Shown here in pieces: positions 48,901-60,900 of a stretch of 64,000 nt of DNA (position 1 is the first letter of the stretch; each line of letters opens with the position of its first letter). Under the pieces are notes generated by a model. It did no database searches. It was not told where the DNA came from and saw only the letters and a list, made by a program, of their open reading frames with translations. A program made the translations under genes and the position numbers. Source of the DNA: Scyliorhinus canicula (taxonomy: Eukaryota). The DNA is taken from contig NC_052152.1 in the NCBI RefSeq assembly GCF_902713615.1, positions 48,025,810 through 48,089,809 on the forward strand. The letters run 5' to 3'.

Positions 48901-51900
48901 TTATTGCCAATCCCGAATTGCCCTCGAGTTGATGATGAGCTGCCTTCTTGAACCATTGCACTCCATGAGATGTAGATACACCAGAGTTCCCGGGATTTAA
49001 CCCCATGTGGAACAAGGTGTACAGTTTTGGTCTCCTTGCTGAAGGATATAATTGCATTAGCAGTTCAGAAAAGATTCCCTCAACTGATTCAGGAGATGAA
49101 GGAGTTATCTTACGAGGAAAGGTTGGAACAGGTACTATTGGAGTTTAGAAGAATGAGAGGTGACCTTATTGAAATGTGTAAGATCTTGAGGGGACTTGAC
49201 AAGGTGGATGTTAGATGATGTTTCCCCTTATGAGAGAGACTGGAATTAGGGGACACTGTTTAAAAACGGAGATAAGGAGAACTTGTTTTCCCTCAGTAGA
49301 TCATTAGTCTGTGGAATTTTCTTCCCCACAGGGCAGTGCAGGCAGGTTCATTGATTACCAAGTGATTAAAAGGGTATGGGGTAGTGTAGCCACCTAAGAT
49401 GGACACTGGGCTACAAAATGGAGAACTGCTAAGGCTGCAGGGAGAAAACAGTCTTAGCAAGGACAAGCAGTTTGCAGAAGGATAATTAGCATTCTGCACG
49501 TACAGAAACCAGTTTGTGGCCAGGTGCAGAATCGCAGCCAAAGGTGTAAATGGCAACAACGATTTACATAGTAATGAGGTGATCCAGATCCAGGCCCACA
49601 CAATAGAAACATTTAGGTACGAATGGATACTTTTGAGTAGACGCCCAGACGAAACGGCACCATAAGTATCCATCACAAAGCACCATAGAGACCGCCCCAC
49701 CCATCGAGAAGCGACCCTCAGATTGGGGGGGTTTGGAAAATATCGATTGGGAGAAGGCCCAATCGATATACAGCAGGTAGAGACCGCCCCGAAGAGGCAC
49801 GGACTTTGGGGGACCTATAAAAGTAGACACCGCACATGGTCCGGTCTGTTGTTTTTGGCTCCGGCTCTCTGCTGTTTTCATCGCTTTGCTGATACATCGC
49901 ATCCTGACTCCAGTTTCATCACCAGCCGTTGAGCCACCAGCCATCGAACTGTAAGTGTCACCACAACGATCGCTACGTGATCCAGACTTTACTAGACCCT
50001 GACGATTATAAGACCCTGAGAGTTGCAGACCAAGAACGGGACGAAGGCCTCGCTCCCTGACCTTGCCTGTTCCTGTCTAGATAAGTATTTTAGTCGTTTA
50101 GTTTAGAAGTAACTTAGTCTCTTTAGCGTATGCATGTGTATTTATTATATTGGTTATAATAAACACAATCGTTTGAACTTACTAATCGGTGTACAGATTT
50201 ATTACTTTGAACCTGACCTTGATGTACTTGTGAGGTGTCTAAATACGGCACCTGGCGACTCCTGAGCAGAATTACACACACAGAGCCGTAGTAGTGTTAA
50301 GCACACGGCCTTTAAACGGAGGCGTGTTAATACACTCCAATAAAACACGTAACACTCAAGTAAAACGTGCAACATTTAGTGGCGACTCTGGTGGGACGCG
50401 GTTACAAGTGGCACCCCCACTCCGTCGAGGACCCAGAAATTTGAATTAGAGATCTGAGTAAAGAAAAAGAAAAAAGAATCACAAGTAATCAAGGTGTTCA
50501 AACGAGGGGGCTTCCGGTTGCGGCTATGACCAGCTAAGTCGCACGTTTGGCTGCTCCTGCTACAAAGGTGTTTTCGGGCCGATTGGAGGGCCCCAACGGC
50601 GCTGTAAGGACAAATCCCGGTGGGGGAAGGCTCCCTGAAGAGAACCAGACCAACTTTATGGTCGGTACCCGGAGTGGGGTGGTAAAGAAAGCAACAGCAG
50701 CTCCCAAAAAAAAGCGGGGGAAGAAGACCAAAATGGCGGCCGGTGGCGCACCCGAGGAATGGAGGAAATGGGCGGAGGAGCAGCAGGCCGCTCTCCTGCG
50801 CTTCTTTACGGAGCTGAAAATGGAGCTCTTGGAGTCAATGAATGCGACGACCACCAGGCTGATGGGAGCCCAGGCGACCCAAGAGGCGTCGATTCGGGAG
50901 CTGCAACAGGAGATGACTGTGAGGGAGGAGGAGGCCACGGTCCTCGTGGGAAAGGTAGAGGTGCACGAGGCACTCCACCTGAAATGGCAGAGCCGTTTTG
51001 AGGAGCTGGATACCCGAATGAGGCGGAAGAACCTGAGGATCTTGGGCCTGGCAGAAGGCCTGGAGGGGTCAGACCTCCCAGGATATGTAGCAGAAATGCT
51101 GAGCTCCCTGATGGGGGCAGGGGCCGTCCCTTCGCCCCTGGAGCTGGAAGAGGCCTACAGGGTCATGGCTAGGAGGCCAAGAGCAAATGAGCCCCCGAGG
51201 GCGGTGCTGGTGCGGTTCCAGCGACTCAGCGATCGTGAGAGAGTGCTGGAGTGGGCCAAGAGGGAAAGGAGCAGCAAGTGGGAGAATTCGACGGTGAGGG
51301 TCTACCAGGACTGGAGTGCGGAGGTGGCAAAGCGGCGGGCCCGGTACAACCGGACGAAGGCGGTGCTACATGCAAAACGGATCAGGTTCGGAATGCTGCA
51401 GCCAGCGCGCTTGTGGGTCACCTACAGGAACCAACACCACTATTTTGAGTCCCCAGAGGAGGCGTGGGCCTTTGTACAGGAAGAGAAACTGGACTCAAAT
51501 TAGACCCAGGGGATACTTGGCGGCCGTAGCCGCTCGGGTACTTTCAGCTGAATTCTTTGTTTGGATTTTGAACTCTTGCTGTGGTTTTTCTTCTGATGTT
51601 TTTTTCCCCCTTTGCCAACTTCCCTTAGTTATTGTTATTGTGGTTATTCATGGTTATTTATGGTTATTTATGCTGTTTGGTAGAGGGCGACTGTTAAGTA
51701 CATTGTTATTTGTTATTTATCTGTTATTTATAATGTTAAGTTGGGGAGGTGGGACGGGGGGGAGAGCAGATCGGGGATATGGGCTCCTAGGGGGGGTTCT
51801 TTTACAGGCATGGACGGGGACGGGGGTGGAACTGAAGATGGTGGGGTGGGGTGTGGCAGGGCGAAAGCGCGGGCTTTCCTCTGTTTCCCCGCGCGCGGGG

Positions 51901-57900: not shown

Positions 57901-60900
57901 GAAAACAGAGCACCCCACAGCATTTGCAGGAAGGCTGTGGATCCATTTTAACGCAGTTTTCGGCGATTTAAATAGAGCCTATTTGAACCGTGAAAATATG
58001 GTTAAATGGACGCGCACCATAATTTCCCTTGCAACAGATGCAGGGGAAAATGAGGGGAGTCACAGGGTGTGACTTGGCCAGTCATTTTAATGGGTCAATT
58101 GGAATGAGAGGACAGATACACTAACAAGTACAGATATTAAACTGTGTATTGACAGATACTGTGCTTGATCCCATAGCTTTCGAAGGACGAAAGAGGGTTC
58201 ACAGCAAGGATCGGCCATACAGGAGGAAGAGAAAGAGAACGAAAAGAAGACCATGATGGAAGCCTACCTATTACTGTTAAATGTTGTATTTGCATATGTG
58301 GAAGCAAGTCACGTTTCCCCCACAACCCCCGCCGTCAATGTTTCCCTCACACCAACTTCCCCGTGCTCAGCTCTGATCAGCGAAGTTCAGACCTGGTGCA
58401 CAAAATTTATGACATGGTACTCAATGTCATACGTGATTGAATCACTGCTAGTGATTGCAATCCTCTGCATAATTGTACAGACCCTCAGGTTGAGGAAATG
58501 GAGAAGGAGAGCCTCCCGTTCCTGCCCCTCAACCATCTACGGAGTTCGATCCCCTATTTTCGGTTTCCACCAATCCCCCCAGCCCCTCAATGAATAAAGC
58601 ACTATGTTAATAAAGGATACCCATGTATTATATTGTTCTGAACTCGACTGCCGAGTCAGAAAGTGATATGTAATGTGGTGTGAATGGTTTTTAGACTGTA
58701 ATAAAATGTTTAAAGTAAGATAAGGACAGTAGTTGTGATAGGTAGAGGTTCCCGGTTTTGGTAATGCATGTCCCCTTTGACATAGCGCCAAGTAGAAATG
58801 TCAGATAAAAAATTTTTCTTCCCATAGTTAAAGACAGAGTAGACGCCCAGGAACTTGCTGAGGTCAGGGAACACAAAGAGGGCACCCAGAAGCACTCGAA
58901 GCAACGTGCATAGGTGATCCTACACAATTTTATTGTGAGGATCACAAGGAGGGAATGTAGCCACCTAAGATGGACACTGGGCTACAAAATGGAGAACTGC
59001 TAAGGCTGCAGGGAGAAAACAGTCTTAGCAAGGACAAGCAGTTTGCAGAAGGATAATTAGCATTCTGCACGTACAGAAACCAGTTTGTACAATTAACCAG
59101 TAGACATGAAAATAGAGTTGAGGTCACAATCTGATCAGCCACAATCTTATCAAATGGTTGAGCAGGCTCAATGGCATTCTTATACAATTTCATATATATG
59201 TTTATAACATACTTTTTAAGAGATATTTAATCATCCTTGGGATGTGGATGTTGATGGTATGGCCAACATTTATAGCCTAAGAGATGGTGGTGTAGCCCTG
59301 CCTTCTTAAACTGCTGCAGTATGTATGGTTGTTATTCCCAAGGTGTCGTAAGGTAGGAGCATGTAGGATACCGACCCAGTAACAATGAAGGGACAGTGTT
59401 GTGTTTTTAGGTCCAGGTGGTGTGTGATTTGAAGGTGGTGGTGTTTCTATGCAGCTGCCACCCTTGTCCTCTAGCTGGCAGAGGTCACAAGTTTAGGAGT
59501 TGCTACAATGCATGTTGCACATGGTACACATGGTGTGCAGGTAGGGGAGGGAATGAACATTTAAACTAGTGGTTGTGGCATCGATCAAGTACATTGCTTC
59601 TCTCCAAGTGATGTTCACTCTTAAGTGTTACTGGAGCTGCACTCATCCATTGAAGTGGAGAGCATTCAATTAAACTCCTGACTTATTCTTTGTAGCTGTT
59701 TGGAATGGCTTTGTAGAGTCAAGAGATGAGTCAATTTCTACAAAGTACTCAAACTATGACCTGCTCTTAGTTATAGAATTTGCAGTGCCGAACAGTGTCT
59801 TATAGCACAGTATTTATATAAATGGCGCAGTTAAGTTTCTGATTAATGGTGATTCCCCCAGGAAGTCACCAGAATGGTCTTTGCCTGATACAACTGTGGC
59901 ATGAATTTTACTGGTCACTTATCAATCCAAGCTTGAATGTTGTCCAGGTCTTGCTGCATGTAGGCACAGATTGCTCATTTTCTAAGGATTGGAAACAGGA
60001 ATGAACACTGCAATTATCTGAAAACAGGACAGGTAGATAAGGTGGTTAAGAAGGCCTAAGGGATTCTTGCCTTTATTAACCAACAGGTTTATTTGGTATC
60101 ATGAGTTTTCGGAGCGCAGCTCCTTCATTAGGTGAGTCCATCAGTTGGACTTTAACCTAGTGTTGTAAGACTTCTTACTGCGCTAAACCCAGTCCAATGC
60201 CAGCATCTCCACATCATCTTTATTCACCGAGGCATTGAATACAAGAGCTTGCTCTTATAACCTTTATTCACCAAGGTTATACTAGAGCTTTATAAAACAC
60301 CAGCTGGAGTACTGTGTACAGTTCTGGTGACTACACTATAGAAAGGAAGTGATTACACTGGAGAGGGCGCAGAGGAGATTCACTGGGATGTTGCCTGGGT
60401 TGGCTCGGGTTGTTTGGGGTTAGGCTGGATAGGCTGGGGTTGTTTTCCCTGGGGTATAGTAGGCAGAGGGGGGACCTATTTGAAATGTACAAAATTCTTA
60501 GTGGAGGGGTCAATAACCAGGGGGCATAGATTTAAGTTAATGGGCAGGAGATGTGAAGAAAAACGTTTTCACCCAGAGGGTGGTGGGAATCTGGAACTCA
60601 TTGCCTGAAAGGGTGGTAGAGGCAGGATCCCTGACAACTTAATAAGTATTTTAGATGAACACTTGCAATGGGACCAAGTGCTGGAAAAGGAGTTTAGAAT
60701 AGTTTTTGTTTGATGATCCCGCACGTACGCGATATACTGAAGGGCCTCTCTCCGCGCTGTAAAACTCTCTGACCACCTTAAACAGGGAACTTTGGATTTG
60801 GATTTTGTTTATTGACACGTATACCAAGGAACAGTGAAAAGTATTCATGCTGGTTTGAGGTTTGCATCAGGCATTCTGAAGGTCTGCTGGACACTTGGAA

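Follow-up and report, generated by a model that had tools for sequence, protein, structure and literature searches.

An internally deleted endogenous retrovirus, probably class I and epsilon-like, with a nested L1 element in the catshark Scyliorhinus canicula

Introduction

The window analysed in this work is a 64,000-nt stretch of the genome of the catshark Scyliorhinus canicula (contig NC_052152.1, positions 48,025,810 to 48,089,809 of the forward strand), in which a retrovirus-like element with long terminal repeat (LTR) sequence at both ends begins at position 49385. We propose that this element belongs to a family of class I, probably epsilon-like, endogenous retroviruses (ERVs) dispersed in catshark-type genomes, and that it survives as a single defective, internally deleted provirus; the probability of this reading is put at roughly 0.7. 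As genomic fossils go it is ordinary, and it does not represent a new type of element. An initial annotation had described the interval 49385-59099 as a retrovirus-like element with a coiled-coil Gag, no pol, and a miniature membrane protein in place of env, and had placed it in a lokiretrovirus-like or other retrovirus-sister lineage that kept only the structural genes and may borrow Pol in trans. A retrovirus-type LTR element without its own pol was indeed found, and its long open reading frame (ORF) does encode Gag; the lineage, the right-hand end of the element and its supposed gene content are described differently here.

Results

Ends of the provirus and primer binding site

The 5' LTR, as read from the sequence, spans 49385-50374 (+ strand, as do all features of the element and of the LINE nested in it), which agrees with the ~990-bp repeat of the initial annotation. 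It is 990 nt long with TGT...ACA ends and carries a TATAAA at 49816-49821 (LTR position 432) and AATAAA at two sites, 50158-50163 and 50339-50344; its 3' boundary was placed at the CA dinucleotide found 5 nt ahead of the primer binding site (PBS). Self-comparison of the region from 47 to 62 kb gave a single direct repeat, in which 49385-49517 and 58956-59088 are identical at 133 of 133 positions. The second copy is a 3' LTR stub made up of the start of U3 only, and the remaining ~860 nt of a 3' LTR have no match anywhere in the window, so that the 3' LTR annotated earlier is present at its beginning and missing for the rest. Because the TATA box sits at LTR position 432, the stub would cover the first 133 of ~460 U3 bases and would contain no R, no poly(A) signal and no U5.

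The 11 nt that follow the stub (59089-59099, with CA at the end) had been counted as the terminus of the element. A script comparison with the 5' LTR found no counterpart of these 11 nt at up to 3 mismatches in a meaningful position, and they are left unassigned here. Two other models of the ends were considered and rejected: a 3' LTR that is internally deleted but keeps its last 11 nt, since those 11 nt do not match the end of the 5' LTR, and a 133-nt LTR with the PBS at 49516, since the 133 nt hold neither a TATA box nor a poly(A) signal. The long-LTR model was preferred over the latter, as it includes the TATA box and poly(A) signal and is followed by a perfect tRNA-Arg PBS after 50374. The tetranucleotide GTAG occurs beside the 5' LTR (49381-49384) and again at 59100-59103; the pair may be a 4-bp target-site duplication or a chance match, and a duplication would require the element to end at 59099. 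No empty-site or paralogous flanks of the ERV were found within the window, which has no N anywhere in its 64 kb.

The PBS, located at 50380-50397 (5 nt past the LTR), is the 18-nt, TGG-initiated site noted before, and a script comparison with the published tRNA sequence showed it to be complementary at 18 of 18 consecutive positions to the 3' end of tRNA-Arg(UCU) plus CCA. The reverse complement of the PBS is printed verbatim as a tRF-3 (a 3' tRNA fragment) in PMC7330628, and it equals the 3' end of tRNA-Arg-TCT-3-1 (plus CCA) as printed in PMC9126842 and PMC13267816. On the strength of these 18 consecutive matches to tRNA-Arg-TCT-3-1 plus CCA, tRNA-Arg(UCU) is the predicted primer of the element. 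At the other end, the annotated polypurine tract (AAGGAGGGAA, 58946-58955) was confirmed, directly abutting the 3' LTR at 58956. The leader between PBS and gag ATG (50398-56683) contains ~290 nt of ERV-derived sequence, the remainder being a nested LINE. A splice-donor-like GTGAGT lies at 56670-56675, 8 nt upstream of the gag ATG, a position typical of retroviruses; judged by sequence, it is a candidate major splice donor.

The gag gene and its relatives

The gag ORF (56684-58072) is open over 462 codons and truncated by an internal deletion. In its product, an N-terminal region precedes a long predicted helix, and a Pro/Gln-rich linker leads on to a capsid N-terminal domain with a predicted beta-hairpin, a motif like the major homology region (MHR) (Q405-x3-E409-x-P411-x2-F414-x2-R417-L418), and two more helices. 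Pfam gave coiled-coil noise only and no capsid match, and sequence profiles of the gag family matched the PDB through the zinc knuckle only. Neither this protein nor the 114-aa protein encoded downstream was on record in an exact look-up.

In a search of 5.8 billion protein clusters, the close relatives of the gag product were all from Scyliorhinus torazame: five proteins with 63-79% identity (72-79% for the nearest of them), each encoded on its own chromosome-sized contig. Four of the five extend past the end of the gag ORF, via a conserved stretch, to a single CCHC zinc knuckle (PF00098), whereas the window ORF diverges from them and meets a stop a few codons later; it is thus without the end of the capsid C-terminal domain and without the CCHC knuckle of the nucleocapsid (NC) that the relatives possess. 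When the missing part was used as a tblastn query, no trace of it was detected in any frame, and gag was therefore shortened by deletion and not by a frameshift. The 462-aa Gag-like ORF of the initial annotation is accordingly open and bears a conserved MHR-like motif, but it is incomplete. The S. torazame relatives are annotated as stand-alone genes with no adjacent annotated pol.

The wider family comprises 18 relatives among 1.84 billion representatives (HMMER), including proteins of Heterodontus francisci and Xenopus tropicalis as well as Logan, ENA and JGI proteins. Common to the whole family are a helical region with DH..C...I..L, a Pro-rich linker, M-x-P-V, and a CRQxKGEHPxAFAxRLW domain; the last reads as Q-x3-E-x7-R, which is the spacing of the orthoretroviral MHR. 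Distant members with 22-33% identity (from Logan, ENA and X. tropicalis, A0A803J891) keep the helical-capsid-CCHC layout, and the gag family therefore spans at least sharks and frogs. No Danio protein and no named lokiretrovirus protein was among the gag relatives found by phmmer in the 1.84 billion representatives or by profile search in the 5.8 billion clusters, where similarity remote enough to be below the reach of HMMER is possible. Searches of viral contigs and of metagenome contigs returned no gag relatives.

The ORF is identified as Gag by three kinds of evidence: the conserved MHR-like motif, relatives in which a CCHC knuckle is followed by protease and reverse transcriptase (RT), and the retroviral capsids and Gags that top the fold searches described below.

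Predicted structure of Gag

The model of full-length Gag has a predicted local distance difference test score (pLDDT) of 52. It includes helices at residues 118-204 (87 residues) and 212-236 (25 residues) with pLDDT 60-75, in a part of the protein that is poor in Pro and Gly and rich in charge. A long helix is therefore predicted where the initial annotation saw a long coiled coil, but heptad periodicity of this segment was not above that of shuffled sequences in a crude test (224/500).

An AF2 model of residues 283-462, made with a 19-sequence alignment, has pLDDT 76 and consists of an N-terminal beta-hairpin followed by eight helices. Foldseek searches with the Gag models gave no match at E ≤0.001. 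When the capsid-part model was compared with the PDB, the top of the list was almost entirely retroelement capsids: those of bovine leukemia virus, human T-cell leukemia virus type 1, human immunodeficiency virus, murine leukemia virus (MLV), Arc, dArc1, PNMA2 and Ty1 CA (capsid). In the viral library BFVD, the same model matched first the Gag of the Rhinella marina ERV (E 9.5e-3, probability 0.97), followed by Gag-Pol of walleye dermal sarcoma virus (WDSV; E 3.9e-2) and then Gag of walleye epidermal hyperplasia virus 2 (WEHV-2); with the full-length model, the WDSV and WEHV-2 Gags were again first. The matches to epsilonretrovirus Gags with the two models range from E 0.0095 to 0.2, with template modeling (TM) scores of about 0.3. 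The capsid fold for which the initial annotation had proposed an AlphaFold check is thus suggested by the ranking of retroelement capsids at the head of the lists, although none of the matches reaches E 0.001.

Pol of the relatives and lineage assignment

No ERV protease, RT or integrase was detected between the LTRs, either by Pfam or by tblastn of the whole element with the protease and RT of the relatives. Their absence, stated in the initial annotation, is true of the ERV; the interval does hold an RT, namely that of the nested LINE, which had been overlooked.

What the parent family may have encoded can be read from the relatives. One Logan sequence (L002) consists of a 619-aa family Gag, a single stop, and then an in-frame protease with LLDTGAS. 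In a JGI metagenome sequence (L001), the Gag end is ~60% identical to that of the window and is followed in order by a zinc knuckle, a stop, an in-frame protease region, and RVT_1 plus RT_RNaseH_2 (an RNase-H-like tether); L001 is decayed, with at least 2 in-frame stops and at least 1 frameshift. In two ENA contigs the ORF after gag begins in the frame of gag, and in one of them it is 1380 aa long. The presence of gag and pro-pol in one frame with a single stop, observed in relatives only, is the readthrough arrangement of gamma- and epsilonretroviruses. The RT and tether of L001 scored 160 bits against the RT of MLV and of xenotropic MLV-related virus (from palm to connection), 135 bits against foamy-virus Pol, 107 bits against caulimovirus and 104 bits against Ty3; the RT of the family, as judged from this relative, is nearer to retroviral RTs (160 and 135 bits) than to Ty3/Gypsy (104 bits).

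Based on the gag-stop-pro-pol frame, the RT ranking and the fold matches, we propose that the element comes from a class I, probably epsilon-like ERV family; the assignment is one of score ranking and fold matching and not of phylogeny. Epsilon-like ERVs have been described in the elephant shark (PMC4422223), across jawed vertebrates as clade "Mu" (PMC6001957), and in S. canicula (bioRxiv 10.64898/2026.05.06.723177), and the amphibian RMERV and Xen1 group together (PMC12690878). In the catshark survey, Pfam support for Gag was obtained at 2 of 21 epsilon-like loci only (bioRxiv 10.64898/2026.05.06.723177), which fits a Gag that Pfam does not detect.

The L1 element nested in the leader

A full-length L1-type LINE of 5,979 bp occupies 50506-56484 in the same strand as the ERV, of which it is not a part, and accounts for ~60% (about 6 kb) of the interval originally annotated. 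It has all the characteristics of L1: ORF1 (50547-51503, 318 codons), whose product matches LINE-1 ORF1p at E 2.4e-7 in a PDB search; ORF2 (51851-56077, 1408 codons), with an APE endonuclease and RT (Exo_endo_phos and RVT_1 in Pfam) and a match to human LINE-1 ORF2p at E 2.8e-178; a poly(A) run at the 3' end; and a long target duplication, perfect over 15 nt (50491-50505 and 56485-56499, found by script). The 3' untranslated region contains two long G runs, at ~56103-56195 and ~56295-56346. Since both ORFs are open, the poly(A) is in place and the 15-nt duplication is perfect, this L1 is apparently young. An older fragment of the same L1 family lies at 9527-11190 and is 79% identical to 54473-56138.

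The 114-codon membrane ORF

Downstream of gag, an ORF of 114 codons (58253-58597) is open, as the initial annotation had it. The predicted protein starts with a hydrophobic, signal-peptide-like stretch (about residues 5-17), continues with an ectodomain of ~40 aa that has one NVS sequon and two Cys, and ends in a membrane anchor at about residues 57-77, a basic stop-transfer sequence (RLRKWRRR) and a tail of ~30 aa. Its frame is closed by a stop 28 codons ahead of the ATG. Another upstream frame, which is open over 44 codons, ends in very basic residues and gave no Pfam match, stops 3 nt into this ATG, recalling a pol-env overlap.

No relatives of the 114-aa protein were found among proteins of 63-200 aa, viral contigs or metagenome contigs, and there was no PDB match and no significant Pfam match. 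No Env or F-protein family appeared even among the weak Pfam matches, and PF00523 gave none at E up to 1, which for so short an ORF is a weak test. In dinucleotide-preserving shuffles of 58073-58955 (883 nt), an ATG-initiated ORF of at least 114 codons arose on the + strand in 10 of 2000 cases (p ~0.005), and in 70 of 2000 when both strands were counted.

The ORF is most likely a remnant of the 3' coding region of the parent, derived from env or from a small accessory gene. Origin as an accessory membrane protein encoded 3' of env, like the extra ORFs of the walleye epsilonretroviruses, is a tentative possibility: epsilonretroviruses are complex retroviruses with 3' accessory ORFs, the frame is self-contained with its own ATG, its signal-like start and an in-frame stop 28 codons ahead, it is longer than the shuffles would lead one to expect, and spliced mRNAs could be made from the donor-like site in the leader. 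Against this stand the failure to find a homolog in proteins, viral contigs or metagenome contigs and the single copy, which allows no evidence of conservation, and the walleye accessory proteins are not known to be small type I membrane proteins. It is somewhat doubtful that the ORF is instead an internally deleted env, in which the signal peptide and first residues of the surface subunit were fused with the membrane-proximal part of the transmembrane subunit and with its anchor and tail. Such an origin would account for the signal-like start, the Trp/aromatic-rich stretch ahead of the anchor, the basic stop-transfer and the short tail, as well as for the location of the ORF where a retroviral env ends and for the basic upstream frame that runs 3 nt into the ATG as the end of pol overlaps the start of env. 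However, there is no similarity to any Env family or structure and no CX6CC or heptad-repeat remnant in the ORF, ~350 nt of non-coding sequence separate its stop from the purine tract, and a second deletion that kept the frame by chance would be needed. It is about equally doubtful that the frame arose by chance and never was coding; AT-rich random ORFs often contain hydrophobic stretches, the searches returned no homolog, and the length is reached in the shuffles at the frequencies given above, but p is ~0.005 on the sense strand, and the ordered succession of signal, sequon-bearing ectodomain, anchor and basic stop-transfer would not be expected by chance.

Other elements in the window

A second, unrelated LTR element of ~2 kb is located at 5291-7286. 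Its 224-nt LTRs are 97.8% identical with TG...CA ends and a 5-bp target duplication (AATAC), a PBS-like sequence (TGGCGACGAGG) follows the left LTR, and a G-rich purine tract precedes the right LTR. Its single ORF of 331 aa (5590-6585) runs at its end into the start of a protease (DTGA) and has a weak PNMA/gag-like Pfam match, at 24.4 bits against a cutoff of 25. This element is a gag-only deletion derivative with intact ends, and deletion derivatives of this kind are therefore commonplace here.

At 17604-21252 (+ strand), ORFs with RVT_1, RT_RNaseH_2 and rve, together with an upstream 431-aa ORF without Pfam match, mark a decayed LTR retroelement. These pol remnants (17.6-21.3 kb) were considered as the parent of the ERV and rejected: the RT is only 23% identical to that of the relative and belongs to a different lineage.

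SINE-like repeats (short interspersed elements) of ~200 nt are present in more than 25 copies with 76-92% identity (e.g., 11735-11931, 25962-26162, 37454-37646, 47386-47584), and an inverted pair of them (47411-47584 / 48252-48077) lies just upstream of the ERV. ARAGORN called a tRNA-Ile(aat) at 36502-36585, where no Rfam tRNA reached the gathering score; the call overlaps a repeat shared with 46063-46201 and probably reflects a tRNA-derived repeat instead of a gene. The Rfam scan of the 64-kb window found nothing.

Discussion

History of the copy

Intact relatives of the element would be simple or mildly complex class I retroviruses. In such members, transcription would start in the 990-nt LTR, tRNA-Arg(UCU) would prime minus-strand synthesis at the PBS, and the purine tract would prime the plus strand. 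Their Gag would have, after the helical region, a capsid with MHR and then one CCHC knuckle in the nucleocapsid; Pro-Pol would be made by readthrough of the single gag stop, and the donor just upstream of gag may give spliced RNAs for downstream genes. In the copy described here, one internal deletion would account for the loss of the 3' end of gag, of the entire pro-pol and of anything that stood between pol and the last ~0.9 kb (env, if any). A young full-length L1 has entered the leader, presumably after this deletion, and all of the 3' LTR except 133 nt has been lost, these two events being given here in no particular order.

The events at the locus are recent, since the LTR pieces are identical, the L1 duplication is perfect and the L1 frames are open. 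This copy would now have no replicative capacity even with a helper, because the 3' LTR stub would be without R and U5 and the L1 interrupts the leader; borrowing of Pol in trans, as suggested in the initial annotation, is implausible for it. The statement that it kept only the structural genes does not hold either, as gag itself is truncated and the small ORF is at most a putative structural gene.

Alternative explanations

Several observations weigh against a defective class I, epsilon-like provirus. The PBS, 5 nt past the CA of the LTR, is somewhat distant; the fold matches are all weaker than E 0.001 with TM-scores of 0.25-0.34, and the full-length model has pLDDT 52 only. The lineage was called by score ranking from a 344-aa RT fragment of a relative with ~60% Gag identity, and neither an integrase nor an env of the lineage came to light. 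No lokiretrovirus is known to be among the PDB and BFVD representatives, and that lineage is excluded only indirectly. Finally, a single genomic copy with the 3' region was seen, and the deletion may have occurred after integration or have been inherited from a propagating deleted family. The last point leads to an alternative that we consider unlikely: a non-autonomous ERV family, comparable in sharks to the zebrafish BHIKHARI, would be built of gag plus the small ORF and would have been copied many times with helper Pol, and the locus would be a member damaged later. In favor of it, both frames are open, gag over 462 codons and the small ORF over more than the length expected by chance; the identical LTR pieces point to a young insertion, gag-only ERVs needing trans complementation are documented (bioRxiv 10.1101/2024.03.25.586437), and another gag-only element with intact LTRs and target-site duplication is present in the same window. 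However, the C-terminal end of the window Gag is common to no database relative, four of the five close relatives keep the zinc knuckle, and the truncated Gag has lost NC entirely and the capsid C-terminal domain in part. The protein, viral-contig and metagenome collections yielded no second copy of the same structure, and the stand-alone S. torazame gag relatives, which could be taken in favor of such a family, say little in this respect because ERV pol is often masked. An extension of the same idea, that the locus is a damaged member of a gag-only, helper-dependent shark ERV family of class I origin that retained a second gene, for a miniature membrane protein of type I (a minimal Env or viroporin-like accessory protein), because of its use to the element or the host, is improbable.

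Still less probable is the lokiretrovirus-like or other retrovirus-sister lineage that the initial annotation had deduced from the coiled-coil Gag and the long LTR. The Gag of Bik-1, an endogenous lokiretrovirus relative, does have an N-terminal coiled coil followed by CA, and the gag family has no Pfam capsid match and very few database relatives. The relatives, however, have a CCHC knuckle where the Bik-1 Gag has a glycine-rich patch, they show the order of gag, stop and in-frame protease, and their RT is nearest to the MLV type. The best structural matches are epsilonretrovirus Gags, no Danio protein is among the matches, and no F-like Env signal (PF00523) was detected. Lokiretroviruses are reported from lampreys, bony fishes, amphibians and reptiles, and not from cartilaginous fishes (PMC7947760). 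A defective provirus of class I, probably epsilon-like, origin is therefore the preferred reading.

Significance

The locus as it stands is a matter of routine repeat annotation, a decayed ERV with a nested LINE. The gag family, however, escapes Pfam, its relatives among 1.84 billion representatives number only 18, and Gag-based ERV screens of shark genomes will therefore miss it; the tRNA-Arg(UCU) site, the LTR and the Gag are handles for cataloguing the family. Should the small membrane ORF prove to be conserved across copies, it would be a retroviral accessory protein or minimal envelope not characterised before, in a vertebrate host that branched off early.

Comparison with known systems

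Internally deleted proviruses that keep LTR, PBS and polypurine tract are familiar from the mouse early transposon ETn/MusD and the deleted intracisternal A-particle elements, which form families of many copies with one structure. The window copy likewise keeps LTR, PBS and polypurine tract and has lost most of its coding sequence, but only one copy is seen here.

With the lokiretroviruses (PMC7947760) the element has in common that it is a vertebrate LTR element with a retrovirus-type capsid (here a predicted one) in Gag, and some lokiretroviruses, too, are young. Their Env resembles the paramyxovirus F protein (PF00523), of which the window element gives no signal, and they differ from it further in host range, as noted above, and in the MLV-type RT of its relatives.

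A gag-only ERV is not new in itself, as BHIKHARI (Bik-1, zebrafish; bioRxiv 10.1101/2024.03.25.586437) is a published precedent. Both elements have a single long Gag ORF flanked by LTR sequence, whose N-terminal part is helical or a coiled coil and precedes the capsid, and both are without pol, so that copying would need a helper. Bik-1, however, exists in many copies that have intact LTR pairs and target duplications and are polymorphic for insertion, whereas one damaged copy is seen here; the Bik-1 Gag ends in a glycine-rich patch, in contrast to the CCHC knuckle of the present family (lost in the window copy). No Danio protein similar to the window Gag was found in the collections searched, and the pol of the relatives points to class I.

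The epsilon-like class I ERVs and their exogenous kin (exogenous WDSV and WEHV; the Rhinella marina ERV and Xen1; CmiERV lineages II and III of the elephant shark; the epsilon-derived, Env-bearing S. canicula ERVs) have the same LTR-PBS-gag...PPT-LTR layout (PPT, polypurine tract). The window copy differs from them: pro-pol is absent, env cannot be recognised, gag is shortened, the leader is interrupted by an L1 and the 3' LTR is a stub. The likeness extends to the gag, single stop, and in-frame protease and RT in relatives of the window Gag, to the RT of a relative that is nearest to the MLV-type (class I) enzyme, to the window capsid model, whose best, though weak, viral matches are the Gags of this group, and to the host, which belongs to a group already known to carry epsilon-like ERVs (PMC4422223, PMC6001957, PMC12690878, bioRxiv 10.64898/2026.05.06.723177).

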